DNA from: Macrostomum lignano
Lineage: Eukaryota
Assembly (NCBI GenBank): GCA_002269645.1
Contig: NIVC01001691.1
Span: 13,534-77,533, forward strand
DNA: 64,000 nt
Direction: 5' to 3'
Made by a program: the position numbers and the translations under genes. Below are positions 2,949 through 41,291 of the stretch, one piece after another. The stretch's first letter is position 1; each line of letters opens with the position of its first letter. Under the pieces are notes generated by a model that was not told the DNA's origin, did no database searches, and saw nothing but the letters and a program-made list of their open reading frames with translations.

Positions 2949-3176
2949 ATGTCGTCAAAATTGCGCCAACAATTAGCAGCGGATAAAGATGACGTCATAC
3001 CGCCGAAAGTTGCCGCAGCGGCTGCCGCGGCTGCCAATGCAGCAGGCAGCGGCCCGAACAGTCGGGCGTTTCAAGCCACCGCCAGGCGTCAGCGAATGTG
3101 CACCTCTAGGGCTGTTGGCATTGTTGAACAGCTGGCCGGCCAGGGCAGCGTCGGCATGGTGTACTTTTCGAGAGTT
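2949..3176 (+). CDS. RPAP2: RPAP2 exon 1
   Basis: ATG at 2949; donor GTGAGT at 3177, phase 0. Confidence 0.82.
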
Positions 3177-5677
3177 GTGAGTTCGGGTGCTCAGTTTTGT
3201 TGCTGAGTTAAATGTGGTAGAATTTAAGGGTAGAATAGAGTACATTGTCAGTAGATTCGGAAGTAGAATATAAGGGTAGAGTAGAGTATACTTTTATTAG
3301 ATTTCAGGGGTAGAAATTTAGGGTAGAATAGACTAGATTTATAGTAGATTCGGGAGTAGAATATAGGGACAGAATAAAGTCTATTTTAGTAGATTCAAGG
3401 GTAGAAATGAGGGGTAGAGTATTTTTTCAATGTATTCAGAAGTAGAAATAAAGGGTAGAAAATCATATTTTTAGTAGATTCAGTAGTAGAAATTAAAGAT
3501 AGAATAAAATACGAGTATGTTTTAGTAGATATATAGGAGCATATAAATTAGGGCGGAATAGAAGACGAAATAGATTAGGGATAGAACGATGGTAGAATGG
3601 TAGGGTGGATTCAAAGCTCAGCATAGCGGTTAATCCCGTCTCTCCCCATCCGCAGCTGATCTACCTCAGCCGGCAGCACTACCTGGACGCGGTTACTGAG
3701 CGCAACTTGACCAACTCTTGCGGCTTCCCGCTGTGCCCTGAGCCGCTGAGCCCCACTAACGACAGAGCGCAACAGCAGCGCTACCGGATCATTGCGTCTA
3801 CTAGGCGGGTGTATGATGTCACTCGGCGAAAGGTGACAGATGGATCTGGCTAGGCTCGGGTGTCTTGTTGCCGGGTATCGGATGTCAGGTAGCCAAATGT
3901 CAGGTACTCAAATGTCAGGTAGTCAAATGTCAGGTACTCAAATGTCAGGTAGTCAAATGTCAGGTGTCAGGTAGTCAAATGTCAGGTGTCAGGTAGTCAA
4001 ATGTCAGGTAGCCAAATGTCAGGTAGCTAAATGTCAGGTAGCCAAATGTCAGGTGTCAGGTAGCCAGATGTCAGGTGTCAGGTAGCCAATTGTCAGGTAG
4101 CCAAATGCCAGGTAGTCAAATGTCAGGTAGCCAATTGTCAGGTACTCAAATGTCAGGTAGTCAAATGTCAGGTAGCCAAATGTCAGGTAGCCAAATGTCA
4201 GGTAGCCAAATGTCAGGTAGCCAAATGTCAGGTAGTCAAATGTCAGGTAGTCAAATGTCAGGTAGCCAATTGTCAGGTAGCCAATTGTCAGGTAGTCGAA
4301 TGGCAGGTAGCCAAATGTCAGGTAGCCAATTGTCAGGTAGCCAATTGTCAGGTAGCCAATTGTCAGGTAGCCAATTGTCAGGTAGCCAAATGTCAGGTAG
4401 CCAAATGTCAGGTAGTCAAATGTCAGGTAGCCAATTGTCAGGTAGCCAATTGTCAGGTAGTCGAATGTCAGGTAGCCAAATGTCAGGTGTCAGCTATCGC
4501 AGAGGTGAATTTCTCAATGCCATCGCTCAGTGCTACTGCTCCGATGCCTGCTTTGCCCAATCGACCTACGTACACGATCAACTCATCCCGGAGACTCCGC
4601 TGTGGCTTCGCGTCGGCGCCGATGCTTCCGCCTCCTCCGTCGATCCGCCGCCGCTCACCGCCGACGCCCTGACGGAGACGCTCGCCGCAGTGGAGCCGCG
4701 GCCTGGCGACCCGGTGGTCCTGGACGCCGTGGCCGAAGATTTGGACCGGCTGCTCAAAATCAGCGACAAGCCGCAGGCGTCGGAAGTCAAGGAGGCGCCA
4801 AAGTTATCGACGGAGACGCCGGCCCAGCGGCCGAGTCTGGCCTGGCTGGACCGGCTCGTCCAGTCGACATCGACGGCTACAGACTCGGCGCCGTTTGCGA
4901 CGTCCACAGCGAGTCAGCGGGCCGATCCGGAGACTGCAGCGTTCGCCGTCGCGTCCGATTGGTTTACCCGGGCTACCAGGGACTTTCTGACTAATCGGAG
5001 CAGACCCATGGCGTCAGCTGGCACCGCTGCTGACAGCGTCGCTAAGGCTACCGTTCGGTTGCTAAGCAACGAAGTAGCGACCCCGTTGGCAACCAAAAGA
5101 AATGTTCCTTCCGCTGTTAAAAGCTCGTCCAATTCGAACTCCGTGAAAATTTTTGAACGATTTTCCTCGTCCTCTGCTGGCAAGTAACTGTGTTCCAGCC
5201 TTTTGGCTATCAGCCTTAGTGAGTTAGTTAGGTAGATTCGTAGGTAAGTAGGTAGTTAGGTATTTAATTAGTTAGTTAGTTACTTAGTTAGTTAATTAGT
5301 TAGTTTGTTTGTTTGCTAGTCAGTCAGTTAGTTAGCTAGTTAGTTAGTTAGTTAATTAGTTAGTTAGCTAGTTTGTTTCTTAGTGAGTTAGTTAGTCAGT
5401 TAGTTAGTCAGTTAGTTAGTCAGTTAGTCAGTTAGTTAGTCAGTTAGTTAGTTAGTTAGTTAGTTAGTCAGTTAGTTAGTTAGTTAGTTAGTTAATTAGT
5501 TAGTTAGCTAGTTAGTTACTTAGTGAGTTAGTTAGTCAGTCAGTTAGTTAGTTTGTTAGTTAGTTTGTTAGTTTGTTTGTTTGCTAGTTAGTCAGTTAGT
5601 TAGCTAGTTAGTTAGTTAGTTAATTAGTTAGTTAGCTAGTTTGTTTCTTAGTGAGTTAGTTAGTCAGTTAGTTAGTC

Positions 5678-5728
<51 letters not shown>

Positions 5729-6148
5729 CAGTTAGTTAGTTAGTTAGTTAGTTAGTTAATTAGTTAGTTAGCTAGTTAGTTACTTAGTGAGTTAGTTAGT
5801 CAGTCAGTTAGTTAGTTTGTTAGTTAGTTTGTTAGTTTGTTTGTTTGCTAGTTAGTCAGTTAGTTAGCTAGTTAGTTAGTTAGTTAATTAGTTAGTTAGC
5901 TAGTTTGTTTCTTAGTGAGTTAGTTAGTTAGTTAGTTAGTCAGTTAGTTAGTCAGTTAGTTAGTCAGTTAGTCAGTTAGTTAGTTAGTTAGCTAGTTAGC
6001 TAGTTAGTTAGTTAGTTAGTTAGTTAGTCAGTCAGTTAGTTAGTTAGTTAGTTAGTTTGTTTGTTTGTTAGTTAGTTTGTTAGTTTGTTTGTTTGCTAGT
6101 TAGTCAGTTAGTTAGCTAGTTAGTTAGTTAGCTAGTTAGCTAGTTAGC

Positions 6149-6208
<60 letters not shown>

Positions 6209-6405
6209 CAGTTAGTTAGTTAGCTAGTTAGCTAGTTAGTTAGTTAGTTAATTAGTTAGTTAGTTAGTCAGTCAGTTAGTTTGTTAGTTTGTTTGTTTGC
6301 TAGTTAGTCAGTTAGTTAGCTAGTTAGTTAGTTAGCTAGTTAGCTAGTTAGTTAGTTAGTTACTTAGTTAGTTAGTTACTTAGTTAGTTAGTCAGTTAGT
6401 TAGTC

Positions 6406-6457
<52 letters not shown>

Positions 6458-6469
6458 CGTTAGTTAGTG

Positions 6470-6504
<35 letters not shown>

Positions 6505-9500
6505 CAGTTAGTTATCAATACGCTCGTAGTTTGTTCGTCAGTTAGTTACTTAGTTCGTTTTAGCATAAAATACGTTAAAATTCGCAGCTTGCCTACTAAC
6601 ATCAAACTGACAGTAGCATGATTAGCAGCTGTGTTCTATTCTATTTTAGAAAAAGAAACGGCCGCGAGGGAGCAGCGCCGCATGCCGCCGGTGGACTCAG
6701 CCAGCCAGGTGACCCTGCGTCGTCGCGTCGTCCAAGAAAAATTGGCCGCTTTTGTCGGCGCCGCCGCTGTTAAACTCGACGGCTTAAATTGCATCGCGGA
6801 CGATCTCAGGCAGCTTGTTGACACGTTCAAGTGCGTGCTTTTAATTGTGTCCTCGCTGAGTGTGTTTAACTCCAGCGCTGTTTTAATAAGTGTATAAGCT
6901 CAGTCCGATCTGTTTGAACAATTCCTTCACAGGCTGACAAGCGGCAACATTGCTTTGGCCACGCCTGTGTGGGAGATCCTTGGCTGGCTCGTACTCATGC
7001 TGTGAGTAGCTTAAATAGCTCGATATACAAGTGGGCTAGCGAGAGGGCACCTGGCCTCTCTATCCATCTGTTTTTAATAAATATCTCACTTCTCTGAACT
7101 TCTTCAAGCTCTCTTAGCCTCAAACCGAATAGCTCGGAAGGCACCTGTGCTCTCTTTGCGGCCACTTGTTGCTCGTTTAATTTCATACTTGAGCTGGCGG
7201 CACTGCTGGGATCGGAGGGATTCTTCAGCTATTGAGAATTGCATTGCGCAATCTGATCACGGCTTGCTGTTGCTGCTTTTTGGAGTCCTAAATCTTTCTC
7301 AATCTGTGTTTTGTTTTGCTTGCTGTTGCCCCAGATCCTCAGTTGCTGGACCAGCCTCCCAGATCCTCAGTTGCTGGACCAGCCTCCCAGATCCTCAGTT
7401 GCTGGACCAGCCTCCCAGATCCTCAGTTGCTGGACCAGCCTCCCAGATCCTCAGTTGCTGGACCAGCCTCCCAGATCCTCAGTTGCTGGACCAGCCTCCC
7501 AGATCCTCAGTTGCTGGACCAGCCTCCCAGATCCTCAGTTGCTGGACCAGCCTCCCAGATCCTCAGTTGCTGGACCAGCCTCCCAGATCCTCAGTTGCTG
7601 GACCAGCCTCCCAGATCCTCAGTTGCTGATCCAGCCTCGCAGATCCTCAATTGCTGGACCAGCCTCCCAGATCCTCAGTTGCTGATCCAGCCTCCCAGAT
7701 CCTCAGTTGCTGGGCCAGCCTCCCAGATCCTCAGTTGCAGGACCAGCCTCTTAAATCTTCATCCTGGTCCATACCATGCACTTAGTCTGAGCCAAACCAA
7801 GCCAACCATTCAATAATTGAATTCTCAGCTCATCTATGAAACTGTTATGCTATTCTCCGAATTAAGAATCCAGCTATAATATCGTATCCCTGCGGCTTCC
7901 TCTATATCAACCAGGTGCAAGATCTACTCGAGGCGCTGCTCAGTGTAGCAAGAGTTAACAGTTGTGCACTACCTGGCCCAGTGTCAAAAAAACTGTTAAC
8001 ATTCGGGGTAAATACAAATGCTCGTGCTCAACTAGCTGAGCACAGGGAAAGTGTGAGAAAAGCTCTGTTAAAAACCTGAAATTAGAAGAGTCTGTTTATG
8101 AAGACAAACACCCGCCCGAAGTAGGGAGGCTCAGGCTCTACCGTTTTCCTCTCTTTTTTCAATCTATTCTCAAGCTCAATACCGCAGTCACAGCCCCCCC
8201 CCTGGGTCAACATGAGTTATTCTTCTAACTTCTCATTCGTGTCGGCCTGCTATTTACCCTGGCAGGCCTTCGAGGCGGGGAGTGGGGGGTTGGTTGGGTG
8301 TGCAGTTAAAGGTGTCAATGCTGTCTTGTTAACTTATCCCAACAGTTCACTTAAACCTATAATAGTATTGTGCGTGTGTTTGTGTTGCTCAATTCATATG
8401 TGTATATTCTTTAGTCTAAGCGGCAGATCTGAAAGAATTGCTTGGATATGTGCTTTCCTGTTCCAAAATCGAGTGAGAACATTTTCCCTTAATTTCTCAT
8501 TCTTCCCAAAAGCTAGAAGGGCCCGATTGTGTCAAGTGGGAAGAAAGTGAGATCTTCTATTGGCGCAATCGCACCTGCTTTCGCTTTCAGTCTGGCAGCT
8601 TTGCCCCTCTACTGTATGTTTGATTAGAAGAGGGGCTGGGCTGTCTGGCACACGCAATAATAGTGTACCTTGAGCGCGTGTCCCTGCTATGACGCTGTGC
8701 GCGTGTTCAAGATGTGTTTGAGCTGGCACCTGGGCCTATCTATATACTCACATGCTGTAATATCTTGTTCTGTTCCGCTGAAGGAGTTTGCGTTCAGTCT
8801 CAATACTGGACATTTGATAGGCCTGATGGCGCGTGGATTCTTGCTTCTTTATCTTTTGCATTATACTTTTCGTTACTTTTCTTTTTACTGATAAGTACAA
8901 ATTGTTTTATTCGAAACATTTTATTATGTCCCTTAGTCCTCAGACCCCAGTCCTTCAGTCCTTCAGTTCTCAGTCCTTCAGACCTCAGTCCTTCAGTCAT
9001 TTAGTCCTCTGTCATTCAGACCCCAGTCCTTCAGTCCTCAGTCCTTCAGTCATTCAGTCCTCAGTCCTTCAGTCATTCAGTCCTCTGTCCTTCAGACCCC
9101 AGTCCTTCAGTCCTCAGTCATTCAGTCCTTCAGTCCTCAGTCCTTCAGACCCCAGTCTTTCAGTCCCCAGTCCTTCAATCCCCATTCCCCATTCCTTCAG
9201 CCCCCAGTCCCCATTCCTTCAGTCCCCAGTCCCCATTCTTTCAGTCTCCAGTCCCCATTCCTTCACTCCCCAGTCCCCAGTCCTTCAGTCCCCAGTCCCC
9301 AGTCCTTCAGTCCCCAGTCCCCATTCCTTCAGTCCCCAGTCCCCATTCCTTCAGTCTCCAGTCCCCATTCCTTCAGTCCCCAGTCCCCAGTCCTTCAGTC
9401 CCCAGTCCTTCAATCCCCAGTCCCCATTCCTTCAGTCCCCAGTCCCCATTCCTTCAGTCTCCAGTCCCCAGTCCTTCAATCCCCAGTCCCCATTCCTTCA

Positions 9501-12500
9501 GTCTCCAGTCCCCATTCCTTCAGTCCCCAGTCCCCAGTCCTTCAGTCCCCAGTCCCCATTCCTTCAGTCCCCAGTCCCCATTCCTTCAGTCTCCAGTCCC
9601 CATTCCTTCAGTCCCCAGTCCCCAGTCCTTCAGTCCCCAGTCCTTCAATCCCCAGTCCCCATTCCTTCAGTCTCCAGTCCCCATTCCTTCAGTCTCCAGT
9701 CCCCATTCCTTCAGTCCCCAGTCCCCAGTCCTTCAGTCCCCAGTCCCCATTCCTTCAGTCCCCAGTCCTTCAGTCCTTCAGTCCCCAGTCCTTCAGTCCC
9801 CAGTCCCCATTCCTTCAGTCCCCAGTCCCCATTCCTTCAGTCTCCAGTCCCCATTCCTTCAGTCCCCAGTCCCCAGTCCTTCAGTCCCCAGTCCCCATTC
9901 CTTCAGTCCCCAGTCCTTCAGTCCTTCAGTCCCCAGTCCCCATTCCTTCAGTCCCCAGTCCTTCAGTCCTTCAGTCCCCAGTCCCCATTCCTTCAGTCCC
10001 CAGTCCCCAGTCCTTCAGTCCTTCACTCCCCAGTCCTTCAGTCCTTCAGTCCCCAGTCCCCATTCCTTCAGTCCCCAGTCCTTCAGTCCTTCAGTCCCCA
10101 GTCCTTCAGTCCTTCAGTCCCCAGTCCTTCAGTCCTTCAGTCCCCAGTCCCCAGTCCTTCAGTCCTTCAGTCCCCAGTCCCCATTCCTTCAGTCCCCAGT
10201 CCCCAGTCCTTCAGTCCTTCACTCCCCAGTCCTTCAGTCCTTCAGTCCCCAGTCCCCATTCCTTCAGTCCCCAGTCCTTCAGTCCTTCAGTCCCCAGTCC
10301 TTCAGTCCTTCAGTCCCCAGTCCTTCAGTCCTTCAGTCCCCAGTCCCCAGTCCTTCAGTCCTTCAGTCCCCAGTCCCCATTCCTTCAGTCCCCAGTCCCC
10401 AGTCCTTCAGTCCTTCACTCCCCAGTCCTTCAGTCCTTCAGTCCCCAGTCCCCATTCCTTCAGTCCCCAGTCCCCATTCCTTCAGTCCCCAGTCCCCATT
10501 CCTTCAGTCTCCAGTCCCCATTCCTTCAGTCCCCAGTCCCCAGTCCTTCAGTCCCCAGTCCTTCAATCCCCAGTCCCCATTCCTTCAGTCCCCAGTCCCC
10601 ATTCCTTCAGTCTCCAGTCCCCATTCCTTCAGTCCCCAGTCCCCAGTCCTTCAGTCCCCAGTCCCCATTCCTTCAGTCCCCAGTCCTTCAGTCCTTCAGT
10701 CCCCAGTCCTTCAGTCCCCAGTCCCCATTCCTTCAGTCCCCAGTCCCCATTCCTTCAGTCTCCAGTCCCCATTCCTTCAGTCCCCAGTCCCCAGTCCTTC
10801 AGTCCCCAGTCCCCATTCCTTCAGTCCCCAGTCCTTCAGTCCTTCAGTCCCCAGTCCCCATTCCTTCAGTCCCCAGTCCCCAGTCCTTCAGTCCTTCACT
10901 CCCCAGTCCTTCAGTCCTTCAGTCCCCAGTCCCCATTCCTTCAGTCCCCAGTCCTTCAGTCCTTCAGTCCCCAGTCCTTCAGTCCTTCAGTCCCCAGTCC
11001 CCAGTCCTTCAGTCCTTCAGTCCCCAGTCCTTCAGTCCTTCAGTCCCCAGTCCCCATTCCTTCAGTCCCCAGTCCCCAGTCCTTCAGTCCTTCAGTCCCC
11101 AGTCCTTCAGTCCTTCAGTCCCCAGTCCCCATTCCTTCAGTCCCCAGTCCTTCAGTCCTTCAGTCCCCAGTCCTTCAGTCCTTCAGTCCCCAGTCCCCAG
11201 TCCTTCAGTCCTTCAGTCCCCAGTCCTTCAGTCCTTCAGTCCCCAGTCCCCATTCCTTCAGTCCCCAGTCCTTCAGTCCTTCAGTCCCCAGTCCTTCAGT
11301 CCTTCAGTCCCCAGTCCCCATTCCTTCAGTCCCCAGTCCCCAGTCCTTCAGTCCTTCACTCCCCAGTCCTTCAGTCCTTCAGTCCCCAGTCCTTCAGTCC
11401 TTCAGTCCCCAGTCCTTCAGTCCTTCAGTCCTTCAGTCCCCAGTCCCCAGTCCTTCAGTCCTTCAGTCCCCAGTCCTTCAGTCCCCAGTCCCCAGTCCTT
11501 CAGTCCTTCACTCCCCAGTCCTTCAGTCCTTCAGTCCCCAGTCCCCATTCCTTCAGTCCCCAGTCCTTCAGTCCCCAGTCCCCATTCCTTCAGTCCCCAG
11601 TCCTTCAGTCCTTCAGTCCCCATTCCTTCAGTCCCCATTCCTTCAGTCCCCAGTCCTTCAGTCCCCAGTCCTTCAGTCCTTCAGTCCCCAGTCCCCATTC
11701 CTTCAGTACCCAGTCCTTCAGTCCCCAGTCCCCATTCCTTCAGTCCCCAGTCCTTCAGTCCTTCAGTCCCCAGTCCTTCAGTCCCCATTCCTTCAGTCCC
11801 CAGTCCTTCAGTCCCCAGTCCTTCAGTCCCCAGTCCTTCAGTCCCCAGTCCTTCAGTCCCCAGTCCTTCAGTCCCCAGTCCTTCAGTCCCCAGTCCTTCA
11901 GTCCCCAGTCCTTCAGTCCCCAGTCCTTCAGTCCCCAGTCCCCATTCCTTCAGTCTCCAGTCCCCATTCCTTCACTCCCCAGTCCCCAGTCCTTCAGTCC
12001 CCAGTCCTTCAGTCCCCAGTCCTTCAGTCCCCAGTCCTTCAGTCCCCAGTCCTTCAGTCCCCAGTCCTTCAGTCCCCAGTCCTTCAGTCCCCAGTCCTTC
12101 AGTCCCCAGTCCTTCAGTCCTTCAGTCCCCAGTCCCCATTCCTTCAGTCCCCAGTCCTTCAGTCCTTCAGTCCCCAGTCCCCATTCCTTCAGTCCCCAGT
12201 CCTTCAGTCCTTCAGTCCCCAGTCCCCAGTCCAGTCTGACATTCTTTCAGTCTGCCTGCCAGCCTGTTAATCTCAGTTTGCAGATTAAGAACATGCAAGA
12301 CCATTTCGGACAGAGGCCTCTGTTTGCCAACTTTTTTCGTTTAGGATAAATCCCTTTTCTCTGCTCTACTTGATTTCGCTTCTTCTTGTAGCAGCAGACG
12401 ACAGGCTGAAGCAGCGCATATGTTCGCTAGTTTTTTCGCTGAATGAGCAGCCTGTTTGCATTGGGGGACAGAGACGGACGGGAGGGCCTCAAAGTCTTCT

Positions 12501-15500
12501 TTATAATAGTGTAATATTTAGCTGCATGCAATTCCCATAAATAGGGAAGGATATATCACTACTAAGACCAATCTGTAAGAGCGCTCAAGTTTGCAAAAAA
12601 GGGTCCTTCTGCTTCAGGCCCGACAGACAATCCTGAAGTGTCCCCATATGCTTGCTGTTGACACATTTTTAAAGCAGTTTTTTTTATATTCCTGCAAGCC
12701 TGAGCGATTAGCAAGGTGTTTGCTTTTGCGCTTCTGCCCTTCTGGAGGGAGGGGGGTTGCCATTATCTTGATTGTTAACCTTGATTTTTTGCAGACAATC
12801 AGCTAAGCAGTGCAGCGCGAATCGGAATCTTAAGAGGTCATTGCGGGACGGGGGAGCATCGCCCTTATGCATTGTGCGTGTCCACTTCAGGCAATGCTTC
12901 TGCAGATTTTTGCTGCGTCTGTTGCTGCTTTCGCATCTCTTCAAGCCGGATAGAGTGGGAATCGTTTCTGCTTTTGCTGTTGCTGCGTGTGTTTTGTGAA
13001 ACAAAAACAAAATCGATCGCGGAACCTCCCGACAGGATCAGGTGCTGCGTCCCCCTCCCCCGATTTCCTCTCTTGTCCTTGCTTTCTTTCTGCTTCTAGA
13101 TTCCCAGCAGTTGATTCTCTGATTTCTAATCCTTGTTGCTATTCCTTCTAGAAGCAGCAGCAGCAGCAGCATCTCCTTGACGGAAGTGAGAAGAGGGGTT
13201 AAAAACTAACCTAAGCCGCGCACACAGATTATGCATTGTTAGGAGAAATAGGGGCGGTTTGCGCGTGTCTCTGTGTATGTGTGTGTGTTTTGCTAGACCA
13301 ATTTTGAACAAATACGGACCATCAAATCCCGCCTGCAGATGCTTTTTAGCTCCCGATTCCCATCTCCATTTCCTGTCTCATTTTTGCCGCTTAGATTCCT
13401 AATACCTTTCTCAATCAAATATAAGCTACTGCCTGTATCACCCCGCTTTCCCCTAAAATTCGTTTTGGAAGGTCCAGGCTTCCTGTGTTGTCTCTATATA
13501 AATTTGTATGTGTGTATGTATGCGTGTGTAAGTCTGTCTTTCTCAATCTTTTGCAGGCAAATATGAATTCCAGTTCGGTTTAAAACTGTGGAAACGTCTG
13601 GGATACGACTGGCCCGCGACTCAAATTTTGGGAGTGTGGGAGGTTTGGGAAATTGAGTCTGATAATTCTCGGGTGATAATCCTTATTTTCTTCAGAAATG
13701 TTTCATCTGCCGGGGTTCTAATGCGGCTTTGCTGTCCTTTGGTTTGCGATTTTATAACTTGGGTGTGGGAATGGGAGGGCGATGCAGGGAGAGAAATGTA
13801 TTGATCAGGGGGAGATGAAAGGGAGATGGTGAGATGCAGGGCGACAAGGAGAAATGGAGGCATGTAGAAAGAAAGGGAGAGAGGCAGAGATGCAGGCAGA
13901 GTGGAAGAGATGCAGGGAGAGAGGCAGAGATGCAGGGAGAGAGGAAGAGATGCAGGCAGAGTGGAAGAGATGCAAGGAGAGATGCAGGCAGAATGGAAGA
14001 GATGCAAGGAGAGAGGCAGAGATGCAGGCAGAGTGGAAGAGATGCAAGGAGAGAGGCAGAGATGCAGGCAGAGTGGAAGAGATGCAAGGAGAGAGGAAGA
14101 GATGCAGGGAGAGAGGCAGAAATGCAGGGAGAGAGGCAGGGAGAGGTAGAGGCTGAGAAGCCAATCTCGCTGCCCTGTCAATCATGGGAACTGTCAATAT
14201 GATCTGGTCATAATTAGTTAAGTTATTTTTCAAGTCGCAATACGAAGCAGAATGATAATTTCATATAGTTTGTATCAATAGGAATCAATGGCAGCAGGCA
14301 GACAAACACAATGGCTGCATGCTCACTCTATTGAGTTGAATTGGCCTTATGCTCAGTTGCTACAGAAGCCAAGAGCAGTCTGTGTAATATATGCGCCACT
14401 GTATATATTAGCCGGGGTTACAAGTCCGCCTTCAAGTGGGTTAGTTTGGTGGTTGCGGATAACTGAAACGCCACTTCAATTCTGTAATTCTCCGCTCGAA
14501 AACTTATAGAAAAGAGAACAAGAGGGTCTCCTGGCTGCCGTGTTGAAGTATTTTTTATTATTGTTCTATCGCCTCCTCCTCGGGTGATCGTGTTGAAGTG
14601 TTATCGCTTGAAAGTGTCGCTAAGGCCTTCCGGGACTGACTGCCGGCGTCTCATCAACCAGATGGCATGGACCGGCGTCTTTTAGAGCTCTTCAGGGTAT
14701 CTTGCTGCAGCGTCTGCTGTCTAGCTGTGTGTGTGTGTCTGCGCTTATTTCTGATTTTTCACCTAACCTAATAAAACCCACACCTTGACATCCCAGATGG
14801 GACGCCTGTTATGTGATTCGATAGCTACTGTATCCATTAAAATAGCCTAAATGCCTGCTTGAATATTGATAGTAGAAGTCTTAGAAGTCTTCTCGTTATG
14901 TTGTCGAAGCCTACTCGTATATATACTCGTAACTATACATGCAATAGAACGACACTTTCGGCACCTGTGTTCAAGGCGCTGTGTCTGCCTGTAGAACCAT
15001 GAAAAAATTGCCGAGACGTTTGCGGCTGCAAATGAGAATGGACAGCTGAGGGGGAGAGGGAGAGGCTGAGAGGGAAAAGGAGAGGCTGAGATGGAAAAGG
15101 AGAGGCTGAGAAGGAAAAGGAGAGGCTGAGAGGGAGAGGCGCTGAGGGAAAGGGAGATTCTGAGAGGGAGAGGCTGAGAGGGAAAGGGAGAGACTAAGAG
15201 GGAGAGGCTGAGGGAAAGGGAGAGGCTAAGAGGGAAAAAAAGATTCTGAGATGGAAAGGGAGAGGCTGAGAGGGAGAGGCTAAGAGGGAGAGGCTAAGGG
15301 AAAGAAAGATTCTGAGATGAAAAGGGAGAGGCTGAGAGGGAAAGGGAGAGGCTGAGATGGAAAGGGAGAGGCTGAGAGGGAAAGGGAGAGGCTGAGATGA
15401 AAAGGGAGAGGCTGAGAGGGAAAGGGAGAGGCTGAGATGGAAAGGGAGAGGCTGAGAGGGAAAGGAAAAGAGAGAGGCTGAGAGGGAAAGGGAGAAGCTG

Positions 15501-17082: not shown

Positions 17083-17127
<45 letters not shown>

Positions 17128-17142
17128 CTGGTAGTGTCTGTT

Positions 17143-17179
<37 letters not shown>

Positions 17180-28144: not shown

Positions 28145-28595
28145 TGGATTGCTAATCTAGCCAATATGGAAGGAATAGAATGGATTGCTAATCTAGCCAA
28201 TATGGAAGGAATACAATGGATTGCTAGTCTATCCAATATGGAAGGGATAGAATGGATTGCTAATCTAGCCAATATGGAAGGAATAGAATGGATTGCTAGT
28301 CTATCCAATATGGAAGGAATACAATGGATTGCTAGTCTATCCAATATGGAAGGGATATAATGGATTGCTAGTCTATCCAATATGGAATGAATATAATGGA
28401 TTGCTAGTCTATCCAATATGGAAGGGATAGAATGGATTGCTAATCTAGCCAATATGGAAGGAATACAATGGATTGCTAGTCTATCCAATATGGAAGGGAT
28501 ATAATGAATGGATTGCTAGTCTATCCAATATGGAAGGAATATAATGGATTGCTAATCTAGCCAATATGGAAGGAATATAATGGATTGCTAATCTA
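28145..28595. repeat. 36-bp minisatellite (TGGATTGCTAGTCTATCCAATATGGAAGGAATACAA)
   Basis: About 12 copies. Confidence 0.95.
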
Positions 28596-29374: not shown

Positions 29375-29812
29375 GCTTTAAACTGCAATCAGAGGGCTCT
29401 AAACTGCAATCAGATAGCGCTAAACTGCAATCAGATAGCGCTAAACTGCAATCAGATAGCGCTAAACTGCAATCAGATAGCGCTAAACTGCAATCAGATA
29501 GCGCTAAACTGCAATCAGATAGCGCTAAACTGCAATCAGATAGCGCTAAACTGCAATCAGAGGACTCTAAACTGCAATCAGAGGACTCTAAACTGCAATC
29601 AGAGGACTCTAAACTGCAATCAGATAGTGCTAAACTGCAATCAGATAGTGCTAAACTGCAATCAGATAGCGCTAAACTGCAATCAGAGGGCTCTAAACTG
29701 CAATCAGAGAGCTCCGAACTGCAATCAAATAGCGCTAAACTGCAATCAGAGGGCTCTGAACTGCAATCAGAGGGCTCTGAACTGCAATCAGAGGGCTCTG
29801 AATTGCAAACAG
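29375..29812. repeat. 21-bp minisatellite (CTAAACTGCAATCAGATAGCG)
   Basis: About 21 copies. Confidence 0.95.
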
Positions 29813-31584: not shown

Positions 31585-32050
31585 TGTCTCTCTGAGACTC
31601 CTGAGATTCTGAGACTTCTGAGGTTGAATGCGACTGAGACTCAGGTTTGATGAGACTGAGATTGAGTGAGACTGAGTTATTGAGTGAGACTGAGATTGAG
31701 AGCGACTGAGATTGAGAGAGATTGAAATTAAGTGAGATTGAGAGAGACTGAGATTGAGTGAAACTGAGATTGAGTGAGACTGAGATTGAGTGATACTGAG
31801 ATTGAGTGAAACTGAGACTGAGTGAGACTGAGATTGAGTGAAACTGAGACTGAGTGAGACTGAGATTGAGTGAGACTGAGACTGAGTGAGACTGAGATTG
31901 AGTGAGACTGAGATTGAGTGAGACTGAGATTGAGTGAGACTGAGATTGAGTGAAACTGAGACTGAGTGAGACTGAGACTGAGTGAGACTGAGATTGAGTG
32001 AGACTGAGATTGAGTGAGACTGAGATTGAGTGAGACTGAGACTGAGAATC
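31585..32050. repeat. 16-bp minisatellite (GAGTGAGACTGAGATT)
   Basis: Direct inspection. Confidence 0.92.
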
Positions 32051-33624
32051 AGAGGGAGATGGAGATGGAGACTAAGTCTTGGTTTCATAATGAGAGGACA
32101 CGAACTGAGAAGCAGTGTGATGTAGCCTGATTAATAGATTATAATAGATTATCTCAGCAGGTAGCTGATGGGATCGGCAAAAATTGTAATTATCCCAGCA
32201 TTTCAGAGACAAACAAACTCATACATATTGTAGTGGGACTTCACGAGTCCAAAGCCGGGAGTTAACAGCAAGTTTAACAATCATAAAGCCCCATCACCAC
32301 TCAGTGTCCGGGAGTCTGCACAAACACTATAGCCTAAAGCTATCAACGGGATACTTTATAATCCTTGCATCAGATAGTGGTTAGCAAGTTTGAACTCCCA
32401 GCCGTCACTGCTGTGTCCTGCCCGACAACACCTGTTGGAATGGCCTAAGCTATATTCCCCATCTACCTCTGAGCATTGCAGGAAGCGAAGTGCCATTAGA
32501 GGAGTGAAATAACTGCCCATGGGTATGCTCAAACAGATTCCCTGAGCTGAGACTGTGAGCAACTCTACTAAAAAACTGATGCAGACTCTCCATCCCGGAT
32601 CGCTCCAGTTTTCCATTTGGTTCATTCGCTGAGCTTATTTCATCAAATTTCATCAAAATTGTAAATTTTCCTCTTTCATGCGTGTGTATATGTATAACTT
32701 CACTCTCGCTCCGTCCCTCTCTTCAACTTTATTAATGGGAAAACCTTGACAAGGACTCCGCGTGAGACTTCCCCAGGTGCTAAACGCCCCAACTATACTC
32801 TCTTCTTGTCATTCACTCGCTCATGATCCCACAGTTTTCACCAATCTGATTATTACTAGAAATTCACTGGAAACTTTTCAAGACTTGGGGCGGAGCGGTC
32901 GAATTGAATTTTCGATATGGTTATTACGAGCTATAAGACCTCAGCTCAGGAGCTTCACTTTCGGACAGTATAATCTACCGTTGTTTTTAAGCTGGATCCG
33001 GGGGGGGAGCTTCATCAAGTCTGGCAACTTTTCTCTGCACTCGCAGTCAGGCGGGCACTGGCATAGAGAGTCTGGAAAGAGTTTTGCTTCATCCTGTTTA
33101 ATCCGCGGCGCGCAGTTCACTGGTTTCCAGCCTCTCTCTCTCTCCTCTCTGCCGCATCACCTCCCAGATCCCCCAAATCGACTTCTCAGCGGTTGGTGTC
33201 CAAGCCGCGAGCGGTATGAGGCGATCCCGTGGGGTTGCGGATGAGGCCATTAGCCTGCACCCGGATAAGTGGCCGCTAATCTGCTCGGATTACAAGGCCG
33301 CATGCATAATTCAGGGAATTTAACCGGGCCAGCAGCAATGAGCTTCGGGTGTACCGTTCTGCCGAATCTGGGGACTCGAAGTTTTCCGAGCTTTTTATCG
33401 AGTTATTGAAACTGGGGAATCTCCCAAACTGGCAGAGTGAGTTTGTGCTTTTGTGGCCCAGATGCGCTGCCTTCGATTTTGACTTCAATTTTTTATGTTC
33501 CTCGCCGCGAATGACTTTCGGGATTTGGTAGGATTTAAATTGATCCATTCGAAGGGGTTGGCTGAGTTCGAAGCAAATTTAAGTAGTTAAGTTGCAGACG
33601 TTGTAAAACTTATGCTAATGTCTA

Positions 33625-34566
33625 TCCAAGACTTGAGTTAATGAGTTAGCCAATACCTGAGCTAATGAGTTAGCCAAGACCTGAGCTAATGAGTTAGCCA
33701 AGACCTGAGCTAATGAGTTAGCCAAGACCTGAGCTAATGAGTTAGCCAAGACCTGAGCTAATGAGTTAGCCAAGACCTGAGCTAATGAGTTAGCCAAGAC
33801 CTGAGCTAATGAGTTAGCCAAGACCTGAGCTAATGAGTTAGCCAAGATTTTGAGCTAATGAGTTAGCCAAGACCTGAGCTAATGAGTTAGCCAAGATTTT
33901 GAGCTAATGAGTTAGCCAAGACCTGAGCTAATGAGTTAGCCAAGACCTGAGCTAATGAGTTAGCCAAGACCTGAGCTAATGAGTTAGCCAAGACCTGAGC
34001 TAATGAGTTAGCCAAGACCTGAGCTAATGAGTTAGCCAAGACCTGAGCTAATGAGTTAGCCAAGACCTGAGCTAATGAGTTAGCCAAGACCTGAGCTAAT
34101 GAGTTAGCCAAGACCTGAGCTAATGAGTTAGCCAAGACCTGAGCTAATGAGTTAGCCAGGACCTGAGCTAATGAGTTAGCCAAGACCTGAGCTAATAAGT
34201 TAGCCAAGACCTGAGCTAATGAGTTAGCCAGGACCTGAGCTAATAAGTTAGCCAAGACCTGAGCTAATGAGTTAGCCAAGACCTGAGCTAATAAGTTAGC
34301 CAAGACCTGAGCTAATGAGTTAGCCAAGACCTGAGCTAATGAGTTAGCCAAGACCTGAGCTAATGAGTTAGCCAAGACCTGAGCTAATGAGTTAGCCAAG
34401 ACCTGAGCTAATGAGTTAGCCAGGACCTGAGCTAATGAGTTAGCCAAGACCTGAGCTAATAAGTTAGCCAAGACCTGAGCTAATGAGTTAGCCAATACCT
34501 GAGCTAATGAGTTAGCCAAGACCTTAGCTAATGAGTTAGCCAATACCTGAGCTAATGAGTTAGCCA
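33625..34566. repeat. 24-bp minisatellite (GAGCTAATGAGTTAGCCAAGACCT)
   Basis: About 39 copies. Confidence 0.97.
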
Positions 34567-35466
34567 GTACTAGGTAAAATATACAATCAGGTTGCACATC
34601 GCAAATGAAAATTGAAAACGGCAGCCCGCAGCTCATACAAAAACTCATGCATACCCATATTGTCTGGTAAACTGTGCACTAAGAGCAGACCATCTTAGGC
34701 AAAAAGAATACCAAAGATAAAGTCAGTTGTTTTTTTAGATTTTGTAATTTTTATATTATTTTTTTAATCAACGCAGTCACATGTTTTAGTCTATTTATAT
34801 TTGTATTCAAGTGTGTGTGAGTACTTTGTGCAATTGCAGTCGAACTTTTATATATTATTCCCGGTATTAGTAGTAATAATAATATATAAATATATTATAC
34901 GATAACTTTTTGAGTGAATGAACACGACAGTTTCACAAAAACAAAACTTAGAATAGAGGATTCTGAACAGCAGAATTCATAATTATTCAACAATGTTTTG
35001 GGGGTGATGAAGAGTCTTCTTGTCCCTCGTAATATGAAAGGTGCACAGAATTAGCAAAATATGCAGCGCAAAAGAAGACACTCACAAAGAAACAAACAAA
35101 AAGTATTGAAAGCAAAAGGAAATATGTCAGTGGCGGAAATAATTCACGCAAAGGTGCAGCAGAACTCTGCAGGTGCTTCAGTGGCTCCTCCTGGATTGCA
35201 GTTACAATGGAGCCTGGGGCTGCACATGAAGTATCCGGTGAAAAAAAGCAAAACAAAAAAGCAAAACGAAAAAAGATTAATTTATGTAGAAATACATTTA
35301 GAGACAGCTATGCATAGAGCTTCAAGCGGACCTGCGCGGGCTTTCTAACATAAGTTGGTCAATAAATTGTCGCGAGGTCACCGCGAGCATCTGTTGCACT
35401 TGAGGGAGCAATTTCAATTTTTTGCCCATAAAAACTGATCAGTTCTTCCATAATTCTCTGCATGTT

Positions 35467-35472
35467 TTTATT
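35467..35472 (-). terminator. Candidate Gfi1 polyadenylation signal
   Basis: AATAAA on - strand about 260 nt downstream of the stop. Confidence 0.4.
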
Positions 35473-35731
35473 GATATCACCCACTATCAGCGCTACTCTA
35501 TAAGCTGAGTCTTTGCCCAGCTGGGTCCCATTGATTGCATAGAAGCTCTTTGTTCGCTCTCCATCCACCCGCGGGAGCTGTCAGCAGAGAGAAACTTAAT
35601 GAGACTTTATGCGGCCGCGTGAACATGAGGGGGGGGGGACTCATTGGGGCTGGCTACTCGCGCATGAATTCCAGCTTGGCTACAGTACATCTTATATACG
35701 CAGTTTCCAATGGATTGATTCAAGCCCATGC

Positions 35732-35853
35732 CTAAGCCATGGCTTCCATTGTTGTTGAACCGGCCATCGTCTCGGCGATGTTGCCAGCTGCTGCGGATTG
35801 GGCACCGCCTGAGCTGTCGCTTCTGCTTAGAATGCTGTCTACGGAGTATGACA

Positions 35854-35889
<36 letters not shown>

Positions 35890-36159
35890 TGCTGACCGTC
35901 GAGGAGGCGGGGATCAGTTGCATTGGCGACGGGCTGCGAGTGTCAAGGGAGCCGGCGGCAGCCACGGCAGTGGCAGCTGCGGCGGGACAGGCGTGCTGAG
36001 TCTCCGTGTGCCTGCGCAGGTCCACCTTGCGCTGGAAGCTGCGACCGCACTGGTTGCAGGTGAACGGCTTGTAGCCGGTGTGCTTCCGGCTGTGCGTGAT
36101 CAGATTGGACGACTGGCTGAAGGCCTTGCCGCACTGCACGCATTTGTAGGGCTTCTCAC
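35732..36159 (-). CDS. GFI1: Gfi1 exon 5 (zinc fingers 5-6 plus C-terminal extension)
   Basis: TTTTCTCAG acceptor; TAG stop at 35734-35732. Confidence 0.95.
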
Positions 36160-39100
36160 CTGAGAAAAGTAAGAGACGGAGCATCATCTTATAGATTTTG
36201 AACCGGGTAAGGTGTACTTTCACAAAATTTTCCTGTCTGCGATTTTAATATCATGGGAATGAATTTTTATACTGAAATCGGACTAAAAACTCTTCAGTGA
36301 AAAAAATCTGGGATCATGCAACCGGGGAAAGCCTGTTGATTCTCCCAACTCTCCATTTGTTTGCTGGTGTGATGATGCCTCAATGAGGGAGGAATCAGAG
36401 CCGCTGGAGCAGCAGCGGGTGGGGATCAGGGAAGAGACGGACGGGTCTCGCGCGGTCTCCCTAATTGACGGGGAGGAGGGGGGGATTTTTCGAGTGCTTT
36501 CACGCCGCTAGATTTTCATGCATCTATATATTTATATCAATCGGGATTTGTGTGCAGGATTTATAAAAATGGGAAGTGCCTTTCACTATAATTCTGAGAC
36601 ACACATGTGCTTCTGCTTGGTCAGGCTGGGGGGGGGGGGCTAGGGTGAGACTGGTAGGTCAGATGAAGTGTGTGCACAGAGTATGCGGGCCCCATAAAGC
36701 ATAGTGATGTTTGATATATATAGAAATATCTAGCTAAGCGATGCAACTAAATGCATGCATTCATGTAAGAGACAGATGCGTATAGGGTTACAATGGGGGC
36801 CAAGCATTTATAGGTGTGATGTGTTGGCGCTTGTCCGCACGCCGTGGTCGTGTGCAACTCGTAGCATTAGACAGCTATGCTTAGACAGAGGCGAGACAGA
36901 GATGGAGAAGAATCGGTGGGCGTGGAAGCTGAGGAGGAGCTAAACCGCATGGCGGTCACAGGTTAAGGAGGCAATCAGCGAGACCCGGAGGACCGTGGTC
37001 GAGTTTCAATGCGGGTCGCGGAGAGAATTTGGAGGCGTAAAGCTAATTAATTGCACGTCTACGCTTTGGTAGGCGTAGCGGAAATCAGACGGTTTTCAGA
37101 GTAGCTGAATCGGGGTTCTTCGGTCGCCCCCTGCCCCTATCAGAGCTATAAATAGCGACCTCCATACTCCTGCACGCGGTGCTCGGGAGTGACACGTGGT
37201 TTTTGATCGCTGATGCTGGGCAATTTAGGGTTTTTAGACGATGACGGTGTAAAAAAATCGTTTTAGGTGTTGGGCCGCGGGCACCTGGCTTACGGGGCAG
37301 ACTTGATTCTTCGAACCAAGGCCTATAGCTCAGCATACATGTATTTAGCGCAATTTCAACGTGCAACAATTGACGGCTCATTGGGAACTGTTCTCACCTG
37401 TGTGAATATAGGTGTGCTTCTTCATGTCCGACTTCTGGTGGAAGCGCTTGCCGCAGTACTGGCATGGGTAGGGCCGGGTGTCGCTGTGGATGAGCAGGTG
37501 GGTGCTCAGCGTGCTGGACCGCTTGAACGTCTTGCCGCACTCTTTGCACTCGAACACTTTCTCCTGCGAGTGCACGGCCCGATGCTGCGACAGCGAGATC
37601 GAATGGCCGAACGTCTTCTGGCAGACTTCGCACTCGTAGGGCCTCTTGCCGGAGTGAGACCTGGAGTGAAACAAAACCATTTTATAGGGGACTTTTAAAT
37701 CTTGACCTTAATTGTCTTCAATAATGACAGAAACTTTAGAACCAGTTTCGGCTTCTCAGCACTGACCGTCTAACGTGAACCTCCAGTCCGTGCGGCGTTG
37801 AAAACAGCTTGCTGCACTTGACGCACTGGAAGTTGCCGACACCGCCGCCGTTGGTTGACGCGCAGCTGCTCAGACTGTCCTCGTTGCTGTTCTCATGGTC
37901 CTTGTGATCGGCCGGGCTGAGCGAGTCCGTCTCCCTGGAGGCCAAGATCGAGGGCGAATGTCGGTGATGATCGCAGAATGCGGCCATGCCAGCCGCCTGC
38001 TGATGCCTGGGGAAGGCGGCGGCTGCTGCTGACGATGACGATGGCCGATGCGGCGGCGGCGGAAGAGGCGGCGGCAGCGGCCCAGCCGACGGCAACGGCA
38101 TTGAGCCAGCCGGAGTCGGGAACCAGCTGAAGCTGGGATGCTGGGCGGCAGTCATCCGCTGCTGACTCTGCTGATGGTGTTGATGATGATGATTGTTGCC
38201 GCTGTGCTGCAGCATCGACAGGTGCGTCGGCAGAGCTGGTGGCGCGGGCGGCGGAGGTGGCGGAGGCGGCGCGCCGCCAGCCGCAGCCAGGCTGGCGACT
38301 CCGAGCATGTGCCGCAGAGCCGCCTGGTACTCCAGCAGGCCGCGCATCTGCTGAGCCGCAGCGTCCTGCAGCTCGGCGGCAGCTGATGACGTCACGGGAG
38401 GTAGCGGTGGAGCTGCGGGTTAGGGGGGGGAGGTTAAATGTTGACTATAAGAATGCTGTATAGCAGTCGCAATCGGTTAATTAGGTAGGCAGCGCAGTGT
38501 TTGGCGACACACACACAAAAAATCGGTTTAGAAAATCATTCGGAGACATCTCCATGTATCTGAGTTTCTTCAATTAGCCGGGCGCGGCACCCAGCAGCGG
38601 TGCTCAGGCGCCGCCGATCTCTGTGTGTCCTCAATCTCTAAGGCGAGGGGCCCGCATATTCCATATATATATAGATATAAATATAGCCGCATGCTCCCAG
38701 TCTTTGAAATCGGAGATTCCCAATTGAACCTGCATGCTGCGCCACGGTCGGGTTGCTCTTTGGCAGATCGAAAGATCGCCGACTTAAAGACCTCTCGGAG
38801 GGGAGCCCGCATGTGGGAGGTGGGGTGGACAGGATTCGATAGAAAAAATCGGTGAACAGCATCATGGGGTATTAAGCTGGCATGCATCGAAAAACACAAA
38901 CTGTTGCCTTGATAAAATAGCCGCTATAATGTGCCGCAAGCAACCCACCCCCCGCGGTGCCGCAATGCCGCCTCGTTTGAGTTGCTTCTTCATTCGCGCC
39001 ACCCGCTGTCGGCCTTCCCCAATTTCGTTTCTTCCCAGATTTTAATCGGGGATCTTAGTCTTAAACTCATTAAACCCGAGTCGGTGCACTGACAGTTTAA

Positions 39101-41291
39101 CAAATTTATCATTGGAAGACTGAAGAAGCTTTATTTTAGCGAATTTTTTTAAGAACCAAAGCGTGGAGATTTAGCGAATTGAGCGGACGTGCATCTCTTT
39201 TTGTTATTATTGTATAGTTACGGTTGCTATGCCAACGGTACTTCCATCTATATTTCCAACTGGGAGCAGGCATGAGGGGAGAATTATTACAAAACTATGA
39301 ATTGCGGTAGAAAAATTGTTTGCAAAGCAAAAACTAACTTAACACACAGGGCGCACACGCAGTTCTTGAAGTGGCGAATTTTGCCCAGCAACAGCAGCTA
39401 GGGCTTGGGGGGGGGGGAGATTTGCGTCATTTCATTTCATTCCCTATCAAAGCTCGCAACCTCGAAAAATCCCAAGCTGGCTGCATCGATTGCTGCTTTT
39501 TTCGAAATTTTGAACCTGCAGTTCGGTTGGTTGGCTATGGCAACACCTCCCCTGCTCGCTACAATCGAATCTTCAACTCCTTCAATTTCGCTGTTGAGTG
39601 ACGATACAACCAGCTGCATATTGCTGCGGAAAACTCAATCTAAGAAAGCTCTCTACACAGCACAGAAATTGTTGTAAATGCTGTTTAAAACCATGCGGGG
39701 AAAATTGAAATGGCATCATGGTTGGGATCGGCTGGGAAGTCAAGTGTGTCTGTATGTTGGGCCTGTGCGATCCCCAGGTTCTTGTTAACCTTGGCTATAT
39801 ATTCTTGGTGGGCCACTTTTTTGTTCAGGACTTCAGGACCTCGGGGGGCAGGACAGGCAAAACAATCAAGAAATTTGCCCACATTATTGAAGGGATAATA
39901 AATTTGATTACGCCGAAAACAATCCTAATCGGTCTCCGCCCCCCGTCCAACCATGCTGCAGAGAAAAGGATCCCATATTATAGGGTGCATTTCAGGACAA
40001 AGTTTTGTGTATATACGATTCCTACACAGAGCGCCAACCTTCATTCGGGGTGTGTGTATACATAAACAATTTCTAAGATAGAAGCTTTTTTGCAATTGCG
40101 CATCTTTTGCTTCAATTTGGTAAAACGATTTACTTTGAAACAAAACTGCAGTATATTAAAGAGAATACTGACGCCCCGTCTTTCACGTTTCATGTCCCCG
40201 TATGTTTGTTTCATGTTTTCATGTCTTCTATATGAAATTCGTAGAAATGCTCACCGATTCCATTGGGCTTGCCGTGACCTGCAGCTGCAGTGCCGCCGAA
40301 CAGGGCGGCGGCGGCGGCGGCCGCGGCGGCATAGTTCGGCCAGCAGAACCAGGGAGCCGGCAGGCCCGGTAGTGTCGGCAGCGAGACAGCGGAGGAGTTG
40401 CCGCTGGACACCGGCTTGCAGTGCGGCGGAGTCGTCTGCTGCTGCTGCTGCTGAGACTGAGAAGTGTTTGTGGTCGCTGCGGCGGCCGCGGCGGCTGCTG
40501 CTGCGGCGGCTGCGGCAGCTGCGGCAGCCGGGAACGGCATTGGCGGTAGCGGCATCGACATCGGCTGGTGCCCTGAGGCGGCCGAAGACTCCTGCCCTGG
40601 AGTCGCTGTCGGTGGCTCGCCTGTCAAATGTTTTTAAAGAGACAAAAGTTTTCTTGCATATCTTGTTTCTATACAGGCACGGGGAACTGCATTTTTATGA
40701 CCACCTGGAGCCTTCCATATTTATGGCATCGAAGTTTTTATACAAAACATTAATGAGTTGAACATTTTATAAGTTGGCACGGGACGGGCACGATGGCTTT
40801 TGAGAAACTGCCATGCGTGCTGCTGAGCAACTTCATCAGTTGAAACTTGTAAATTAACTAGATTAACTACACATAGACTCTAAAAATGCTCATGCCCTCC
40901 ATAGCTATTCCGCCTATCAATAACTTCCCCCCTGCAATTTTTCCGACGTTTCAAAAAAGAAGCAAACGATTCCTAGGAGAGGCACTCCTTTAACGAGTAT
41001 TGAGTCGGCTTTAGCAGCTGTTCAATGGGGATTCTTCTCAAATCCTACAGTCAAGTCTAATATTCGCCTGTCTGACTGCCTGGCAACGTAAAAAAATCTG
41101 CACACACTTGCGGAATCTTAAGCCCCCCCCTCTCCCTGATTCGGCAACTACTGAGCTTCTATATATCGAAGACATCGAAAGTTATATGGGGCTAGATACT
41201 CACCTTTGATCCTCTTATCGTTGACTGTCAGCTGGAGGGGCTGCTGTTGCTGCTGCTGTTGCAGATTCTGCCGATTGCTTGGGCTGTTCAT
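35732..41291 (-). CDS. GFI1: Gfi1/Senseless-family C2H2 zinc-finger transcription factor, complement join(41291-41204,40620-40255,38412-37767,37660-37398,36159-35732), 596 aa
   Basis: Six fingers nearly identical to Gfi1: [113 protein letters not shown]. All introns are GT-AG with compatible phases; 1791 nt; in-frame stop two codons upstream of the ATG. Confidence 0.95.
37398..37660 (-). CDS. GFI1: Gfi1 exon 4 (zinc fingers 2-4)
   Basis: CTCCAG acceptor; AG|GTGAGA donor. Confidence 0.96.
37767..38412 (-). CDS. GFI1: Gfi1 exon 3 (Pro/Ala-rich region plus most of zinc finger 1)
   Basis: CTAAC branch point and CCGCAG acceptor; CG|GTCAGT donor. Confidence 0.92.
40255..40620 (-). CDS. GFI1: Gfi1 exon 2 (poly-Ala/Gln low-complexity region)
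   Basis: GACAG acceptor, G|GTGAGC donor, symmetric phase 1. Confidence 0.8.
41204..41291 (-). CDS. GFI1: Gfi1 coding exon 1 ([29 protein letters not shown])
   Basis: ATG at 41291 on -; AAAG|GTGAGT donor, phase 1; missed by the ORF track. Confidence 0.75.

Follow-up and report, generated by a model that had tools for sequence, protein, structure and literature searches.

The stretch of DNA analysed here (hereafter, the window) comprises 64,000 nucleotides from the free-living flatworm Macrostomum lignano (Platyhelminthes, Spiralia), positions 13,534 to 77,533 of contig NIVC01001691.1 in assembly GCA_002269645.1. It contains no N, has a base composition of 27–58% G+C, and ~29% of it is taken up by strong tandem-repeat arrays. 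Two of its genes are the subject of this report, namely one for RPAP2 (RNA polymerase II-associated protein 2), a protein of the Rtr1 family, on the + strand, and one for a zinc-finger protein of the Gfi type on the − strand. The two are convergent, lying tail to tail, and their stop codons are separated by a gap of 17,255 bp (18477–35731).

The RPAP2 gene opens with an ATG at 2949 and has six coding exons, whose spliced coding sequence of 1455 nt is in frame and specifies 484 amino acids. Exon 1 (2949–3176, donor GTGAGT) yields, once spliced, the start of a UniRef protein of M. lignano named 'RPAP2 homolog' (P0001), and the N-terminal 295 amino acids of our product are those of this protein. 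The first half of the Rtr1-type zinc-finger domain is encoded by exon 2 (3656–3832) and the second half, together with a variable region, by exon 3 (4531–5179, donor GCAAGT of a GC-AG intron); exon 2 alone matches Pfam PF04181 (RPAP2_Rtr1) with 50.9 bits against a cut-off of 33 (E = 1.9e-13). From the second half of this domain onward, the product is that of the deposited protein PAA65023.1 (BOX15_Mlig027431g1; P0002), which matches the exon 3 junction at '...SSSSAEKETAAR...', exon 4 (6650–6830), exon 5 (6933–7001) and, with an identical C-terminus, the last coding exon (18326–18476, TGA stop at 18474–18476). Exon 4 carries the C-terminal motif PPVD..Q..RRR..EKL ... LRQLVDTFK, which tblastn also found in the RPAP2 gene of the annelid Dimorphilus, where the counterpart of exon 5 is the 'LTSDNIVMKSTEWRKIATYVLLW' exon. 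The last intron (7002–18325, borders GTGAGT ... TTGCAG) extends over 11,324 bp, 47% of which are tandem repeats according to Tandem Repeats Finder (TRF).

Human RPAP2 from solved polymerase II complexes (7f4g and others) matched the N-terminal 150 residues of the flatworm protein (E = 1.1e-17), exons 2 and 3 aligning to human residues 43–159, and yeast Rtr1 structures matched at E = 3e-7 to 5e-3. The cysteine pairs CGFPLC ... YCSDAC are present. A database search with a protein assembled from the RPAP2-like open reading frames (ORFs) returned three matches, all of them from Macrostomum lignano and two identical to the window; both RPAP2 protein searches together matched only M. lignano proteins and one protein of Clytia. 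Judging from its sequence, which passed the tests for the family, the + strand gene belongs to the RPAP2 / Rtr1 family.

The repeats within this gene have left their mark on its annotation. Intron 2 holds a 15-bp minisatellite (3882–4488, 40.6 copies by TRF), across which P0001 splices. A 370-aa 'pentapeptide repeat' ORF at 4075–5187 was rejected as a domain, being the minisatellite read through into exon 3, and the deposited model PAA65023.1 starts wrongly inside the same array; as a consequence, its Pfam annotation as a pentapeptide repeat is spurious and the real exons 1 and 2 are missing from it, for which the N-terminus of P0001 is correct. Intron 3 (5180–6649), of the GC-AG type with donor GCAAGT, is almost entirely a (TTAG)n array of ~325 copies. 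Finally, a second RPAP2-like protein of M. lignano (UniRef A0A1I8FGW3; P0003), which is frame-disturbed and 53–57% identical, suggests that the partly duplicated genome of this flatworm has another copy of the RPAP2 locus.

The Gfi gene is predicted to consist of five coding exons between 41291 and 35732, all with GT-AG borders, encoding 596 amino acids with six C2H2 fingers. Exon 1 (41204–41291), with its ATG at 41291 and no SNAG motif, is predicted only, and exon 2 (40255–40620), which covers a poly-A/poly-Q region, is a prediction based solely on reading frame and splice consensus. The remaining exons are marked by their fingers: exon 3 (37767–38412) encodes a low-complexity region and finger 1 (Pfam zf-C2H2, splice sites), exon 4 (37398–37660) fingers 2–4 (Pfam; blastn matches to the Gfi genes of ten other species), and exon 5 (35732–36159) fingers 5–6 and a Q/A-rich tail (Pfam zf-C2H2 and zf-H2C2_2; acceptor site; stop codon at 35734–35732). 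Fingers 3–5 of rat Gfi-1 (2kmk) matched exon 4 with 165 bits over 81 residues. The finger region as a whole is 79–87% identical to proteins named Gfi-1, Gfi-1b or senseless-2 from nine phyla (the sources being nemertean, annelid, priapulid, bryozoan, hemichordate, amphioxus, echinoderm, mollusc, arthropod and fish), as against at most 49% for other zinc-finger families; KRAB/SCAN zinc-finger proteins outscored Gfi proteins solely through their larger number of fingers, at an identity of 42–49%. The exact predicted product of 596 amino acids was not found in the protein collection.

The SNAG motif MPRSFLVK is absent from all six frames of the 64-kb window. It opens most of the spiralian, priapulid and deuterostome Gfi proteins inspected and is absent from those of insects, the mite and Dimorphilus, so that 11 of the 23 orthologues inspected have it, or 14 if variants such as MPKSFL are counted; the Dimorphilus protein contains only a remnant, LLPRSFPAA, 11 residues in. 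Because the motif is not universal in the family, its absence lowers the standing of the flatworm gene as a 'typical Gfi1' and not its family membership. By its six C-terminal fingers of the Gfi type, the − strand gene, the only one of this kind in the window, thus belongs, as far as sequence can place it, to the Gfi / Senseless / Pag-3 family, and its SNAG motif either has been lost or is encoded by an upstream exon outside the window.

Ten minisatellite arrays were detected by TRF in the stop-to-stop gap between the two genes, strong arrays making up 28% of it. No Pfam family matched the ORFs of the gap (stop-to-stop, at least 35 aa, outside tandem arrays), which were joined into pseudo-proteins, the largest being searched individually as well and a few shorter segments being dropped in query assembly, and a search of the whole window against Rfam gave no match. 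At the sensitivity available, there is no recognisable gene between RPAP2 and Gfi. An earlier note, made from the letters of this DNA, had described RPAP2 on the + strand and a six-finger Gfi on the − strand as converging between 2949 and 41291, with no other recognisable gene between them, in what appeared to be an invertebrate genome. The gene models, families and orientation bear out this description, its end coordinates prove to be the RPAP2 ATG and the predicted Gfi ATG, and the host, M. lignano, is indeed an invertebrate, which removes the objection that the linkage might be seen in a vertebrate.

To place this arrangement among other animals, the neighbours of Gfi orthologues were surveyed on their own contigs, within flanks of 10 kb. 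In Dimorphilus gyrociliatus, Gfi (+ strand, 10001–13138 in locus coordinates) is followed by an RPAP2_Rtr1 gene on the − strand (16881–21534), so that the pair is again convergent; the gap is 3,742 bp and both ranges end on stop codons. The identity of this RPAP2 gene was confirmed by tblastn with the RPAP2 proteins of M. lignano, human and Clytia. A long last intron in the Dimorphilus gene was considered as a parallel to the 11.3-kb intron of the flatworm and rejected as too weak, since it ends in an unconserved exon of 15 codons. The human gene order is EVI5-GFI1-RPAP2-GLMN, with RPAP2 and GFI1 convergent in the reference genome. The vertebrate adjacency to which the earlier note had appealed agrees with published gene lists: cattle chromosome 3 has the order RPL5-EVI5-GFI1-RPAP2-GLMN (PMC11331311), and the human start sites of RPAP2 and GLMN lie 183 kb from a CpG that is itself 1.9 kb from the GFI1 start (PMC5674007), distances that fit the convergent layout given above.

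For genomes of roughly 14,000–20,000 genes, we estimate the chance expectation that one given gene is the 3′ neighbour of another in one given orientation at ~3e-5 per genome, and an independent origin in two further lineages is thus negligible. The occurrence of the pair in a flatworm, an annelid and vertebrates, together with this low chance expectation, is therefore best explained by inheritance, and we consider it very likely that the tail-to-tail linkage of RPAP2 and Gfi comes down from the protostome–deuterostome ancestor.

The survey also yielded observations that weigh against such a history. In four of the five other invertebrates with a visible 3′ neighbour, this neighbour is a gene other than RPAP2: an ADH-like gene 6.4 kb downstream of Gfi in amphioxus (Branchiostoma), two unknown genes and then a sorbitol-dehydrogenase-like gene in the mite Halotydeus, a FERM-domain gene in the beetle Hypothenemus, and a VWA gene next to one Gfi paralogue of Crassostrea virginica. 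No RPAP2 coding sequence was found in the 10-kb flanks of these four loci. The same was true of Owenia, Asterias, Saccoglossus, Priapulus, Mizuhopecten and Menopon, in which no gene is called within 10 kb of Gfi and which therefore speak neither for nor against linkage. For six of the surveyed species, the Gfi genes were placed at CAIIXF020000006.1, 13.64–13.67 Mb (Owenia), CM027638.1, 20.62–20.65 Mb (Branchiostoma), LR699110.1, 5.57–5.60 Mb (Asterias), CM130313.1, 31.38–31.41 Mb (Crassostrea virginica), KQ714931.1, 0.50–0.53 Mb (Priapulus) and GL016027.1, 0.10–0.13 Mb (Saccoglossus). The proposal of the earlier note that the pair has stayed linked since the bilaterian ancestor thus stands in part: the same convergent pair occurs in Dimorphilus and vertebrates, so that M. 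lignano is not alone among invertebrates in showing it, but the linkage is not general. We infer that the inherited pair was later broken or interrupted in several lineages. In operational terms the pair is an ancient microsynteny; in functional terms it is not yet a regulatory block.

Two further observations concern these other loci. An ADH-like gene that seemed to follow Gfi both in amphioxus and in the mite was rejected as a common neighbour, as the mite gene is sorbitol-dehydrogenase-like and has no similarity to the amphioxus locus; on this comparison, the resemblance is a coincidence at superfamily level. In the Branchiostoma Gfi locus, three tandem copies of a segment matching the finger 2–4 exon of M. 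lignano (77–90% identity) lie 150 bp apart at 15939–16472, which may reflect a local duplication or an assembly artefact.

Why the pair should have been kept is a separate question. The genomic-regulatory-block model, the leading explanation for the tie of a developmental regulator to an unrelated housekeeping gene (PMC3514665, PMC7530604), would place part of the cis-regulatory landscape of Gfi 3′ of the gene, in the DNA between it and RPAP2 and possibly also within RPAP2 introns, and a break between the two genes would part Gfi from its control elements. The earlier note had likewise suggested that RPAP2 is a bystander that hosts enhancers for Gfi, a mechanism that is plausible but conjectural. 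The survey by Irimia et al. 2012 links pairs that include developmental regulators to cis-regulatory constraint (PMC3514665). In the mouse, Gfi1 is served by an enhancer at −35 kb, upstream of the gene in an Evi5 intron (PMC3828770), and the human variant chr1:92,925,654 (hg19) has been assigned to GFI1 and EVI5 expression (PMC12932927); by our own reading of published coordinates, this variant lies between GFI1 and RPAP2. Both the Evi5 enhancer and the variant fit the regulatory-block model, if loosely. We regard regulatory constraint, taken as the cause of RPAP2–Gfi retention, as a serious possibility that nevertheless falls somewhat short of an even chance, and inherited linkage and regulatory constraint taken jointly as an overall explanation that is slightly better than even.

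Several results run counter to constraint by elements in or near RPAP2. The characterised mouse Gfi1 enhancer sits in Evi5 and not in Rpap2 (PMC3828770). When the RPAP2 last intron, the interval and the region upstream of Gfi were compared by blastn with ten Gfi loci, only finger exons matched, in a comparison that has little power across phyla because conserved non-coding sequence is not expected at such distance. About half of the RPAP2 last intron and about a quarter of the intergenic interval are minisatellite; stretches outside the repeats include 12.3–13.8, 22.1–24.8, 30–31.6 and 32.1–33.6 kb. Moreover, the pair was singled out post hoc, and a small number of ancestral adjacencies can persist in three lineages with no constraint at all.

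This last point opens the way to the strongest of the rival explanations, which holds that the pair is ancestral, that nothing holds it together and that it was simply noticed after the fact. With ~10,000 ancestral adjacencies, a few per cent of which are retained per lineage, roughly one chance survivor would be expected in three lineages, a figure that is itself a rough estimate. A neutral survivor would also be at ease with the finding that four of the other five informative invertebrates lack the pair or at least have it interrupted, and with an interval that is repeat-rich and gave no conserved non-coding sequence in the cross-phylum blastn. It is, however, less at ease with the flatworm: Platyhelminthes are known for heavy genome rearrangement and the M. 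lignano genome is repeat-rich, so that retention without constraint is less expected here than elsewhere. Nor does it account for the kind of pair that was retained, a developmental transcription factor next to a housekeeping gene, which is the class tied to cis-regulatory constraint (PMC3514665), or for the demonstrated use, by Gfi1 in vertebrates, of elements beyond the gene itself (PMC3828770, PMC12932927). We therefore hold neutral survival to be possible, though on the unlikely side.

The other alternatives fare much worse. Were the pair kept by interplay of the two 3′ ends, through overlapping untranslated regions, antisense transcripts or shared termination, the conserved convergent orientation and the gap of only 3.7 kb in Dimorphilus would be in keeping with it, but the stop codons, at a distance of 17 kb in M. 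lignano and of tens of kb in human, are too far from each other for ordinary overlap of untranslated regions, and we judge this explanation to be very improbable. Hardly any credence attaches to a separate juxtaposition of RPAP2 and Gfi in flatworm, annelid and vertebrates, which has nothing specific in its favour beyond the missing pair in several intermediate lineages and would have to produce the same convergent pair, with nothing between, in three lineages against the low chance expectation per genome estimated above. An assembly artefact, in which the contig would be chimeric in its repeat-rich 19–35 kb portion and the genes would not be neighbours in the animal, could invoke the ten minisatellite arrays as able to mislead assemblers, but it is just as far-fetched, given that the window is without gaps or Ns, that a chimera would need to re-create the Dimorphilus and vertebrate arrangement by accident and that the convergent pair in Dimorphilus makes such a chimera unnecessary as an explanation. 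Even when pooled, these three alternatives are improbable.

Returning to inherited linkage with regulatory constraint, we considered whether the ancestral neighbourhood was larger than a pair. GFI1 and GFI1B arose as copies of one gene in the vertebrate genome duplications. A gene order common to tetrapods, GBGT1-RALGDS-CEL-GTF3C5-GFI1B (PMC5571153), places GTF3C5 beside the second of them. In the oyster, RPAP2 (EKC18756) and GTF3C5 (EKC18757) are consecutive, and both genes belong to squid block 928, classed as 'Bilateria novel' (PMC8851819). The adjacency of RPAP2 and GTF3C5 in molluscs and that of GTF3C5 and GFI1B in tetrapods therefore suggest an ancestral trio that was split after the duplications, and the ancestral block was probably arranged as Gfi >< RPAP2 <> GTF3C5. 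After the vertebrate genome duplications, one copy, GFI1, would have retained RPAP2, while the other would have lost it, which would have brought GTF3C5 to the 3′ side of GFI1B.

Two observations weigh against the trio. In the window, where only 2.9 kb upstream of RPAP2 is available, GTF3C5 is not its neighbour, and the Dimorphilus RPAP2 gene is flanked by an SH2/SOCS gene where GTF3C5 would be expected. ORFs upstream of the flatworm RPAP2 (446–980) gave no Pfam or PDB match, so that neither a GLMN-like nor a GTF3C5-like neighbour is shown there. One of them, a non-repetitive and protein-like ORF of 159 aa at 501–980 on the + strand, itself without a Pfam or PDB match, ends 2 kb upstream of RPAP2 and could represent the final exon of a gene lying further upstream.

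In its fullest form, the proposal is that of a bilaterian three-gene regulatory block, Gfi-RPAP2-GTF3C5, with 3′ enhancers of Gfi in and around RPAP2, divided after the vertebrate duplications into GFI1 with RPAP2 and GFI1B with GTF3C5 in the place that RPAP2 vacated, and still acting as a constraint in a heavily rearranged flatworm genome. We put this forward tentatively and regard it as doubtful. Should it be true, M. lignano, in which transgenesis is possible, would be a test system for an enhancer–host relationship 550 million years old, and the division of the block between GFI1 and GFI1B would be a further clear illustration of whole-genome duplication partitioning regulatory blocks.

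Beyond the pair, in the position that EVI5 takes in vertebrates, the first recognisable gene 5′ of Gfi encodes a P5B-type ATPase. This multi-exon gene (58154–64000, + strand) runs off the end of the window and its introns are packed with minisatellites; its exon at 58262–58900 matches the human polyamine transporter ATP13A2 (E = 4e-68). Between Gfi and the ATPase gene lies an isolated AT-rich block (50000–52000) with 27% G+C, as compared with 40–55% around it. A minisatellite with a 28-bp unit (CCCAGATCCTCAGTTGCTGG[A/G]CCAGCCT, 27/28 identical) occurs both in the RPAP2 last intron (7330–7750) and at 55360–55830, 14 kb beyond the start of Gfi, and a related unit is found at 21640–22063; the arrays form a dispersed family of minisatellites.

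Throughout the animals, Gfi/Senseless proteins direct the specification of sensory and of blood cell types, and to our knowledge little is known of the control of Gfi genes outside mouse and fly. A neighbourhood of bilaterian age marks DNA that is likely to matter for this control and narrows the search to 17 kb in the flatworm and to less than 4 kb in Dimorphilus. Several hundred conserved microsyntenic pairs are known, and RPAP2–Gfi is one more case of a well-populated class, to which the trio and its partition are a testable extension. In view of this number, and since a published bilaterian block already includes RPAP2 (PMC8851819), the general picture is unchanged.

Compared with known systems, the predicted flatworm protein resembles Drosophila Senseless in having six C-terminal fingers of the Gfi type and no N-terminal SNAG motif. 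It differs in that the absence of the motif in M. lignano, where the N-terminus is predicted, would represent convergent loss and not shared ancestry. At the level of the locus, a close counterpart is the vertebrate 1p22-type arrangement GLMN-RPAP2-GFI1-EVI5-RPL5 of human and cattle, in which RPAP2 and GFI1 are likewise immediate neighbours and convergent. The surroundings differ: the 2.9 kb upstream of RPAP2 in the window contains no GLMN-like gene in head-to-head orientation with it, and no EVI5 (TBC-domain) gene lies in the 17 kb upstream of the flatworm Gfi, where the P5B ATPase is found instead. The scale differs as well, ~90 kb in vertebrates as against 17 kb in M. lignano.

Among published blocks, block 928 of Robert et al. 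2022 (PMC8851819) is also close, although Gfi is not among the names in the part of its dataset that was examined. In that part, the oyster partners of RPAP2 are Pole3, an unnamed gene, GTF3C5, an intermediate-filament gene and CXorf56, and its squid partners are GTF3C5 and intermediate-filament genes; the likeness to our pair is that RPAP2 there belongs to a block whose assigned age is that of the bilaterian ancestor. As for RPAP2–Gfi itself, the main text, as distinct from the supplements, of the reports on metazoan microsyntenic pairs and genomic regulatory blocks (PMC3514665, PMC7530604) makes no mention of the pair, Schmidbaur 2022 has no entry for the RPAP2 or Gfi genes, and we found no paper naming the pair as conserved synteny in a search that left most of the relevant supplementary lists outside its reach. 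Genomic regulatory blocks are defined by conserved non-coding elements or enhancers in the bystander gene through which the target gene is controlled (PMC3514665, PMC7530604), whereas RPAP2–Gfi is known here from gene order. What the flatworm pair has in common with these blocks and with metazoan microsyntenic pairs is their characteristic composition, a developmental transcription factor beside an unrelated and broadly needed gene, kept across phyla (PMC3514665, PMC7530604).

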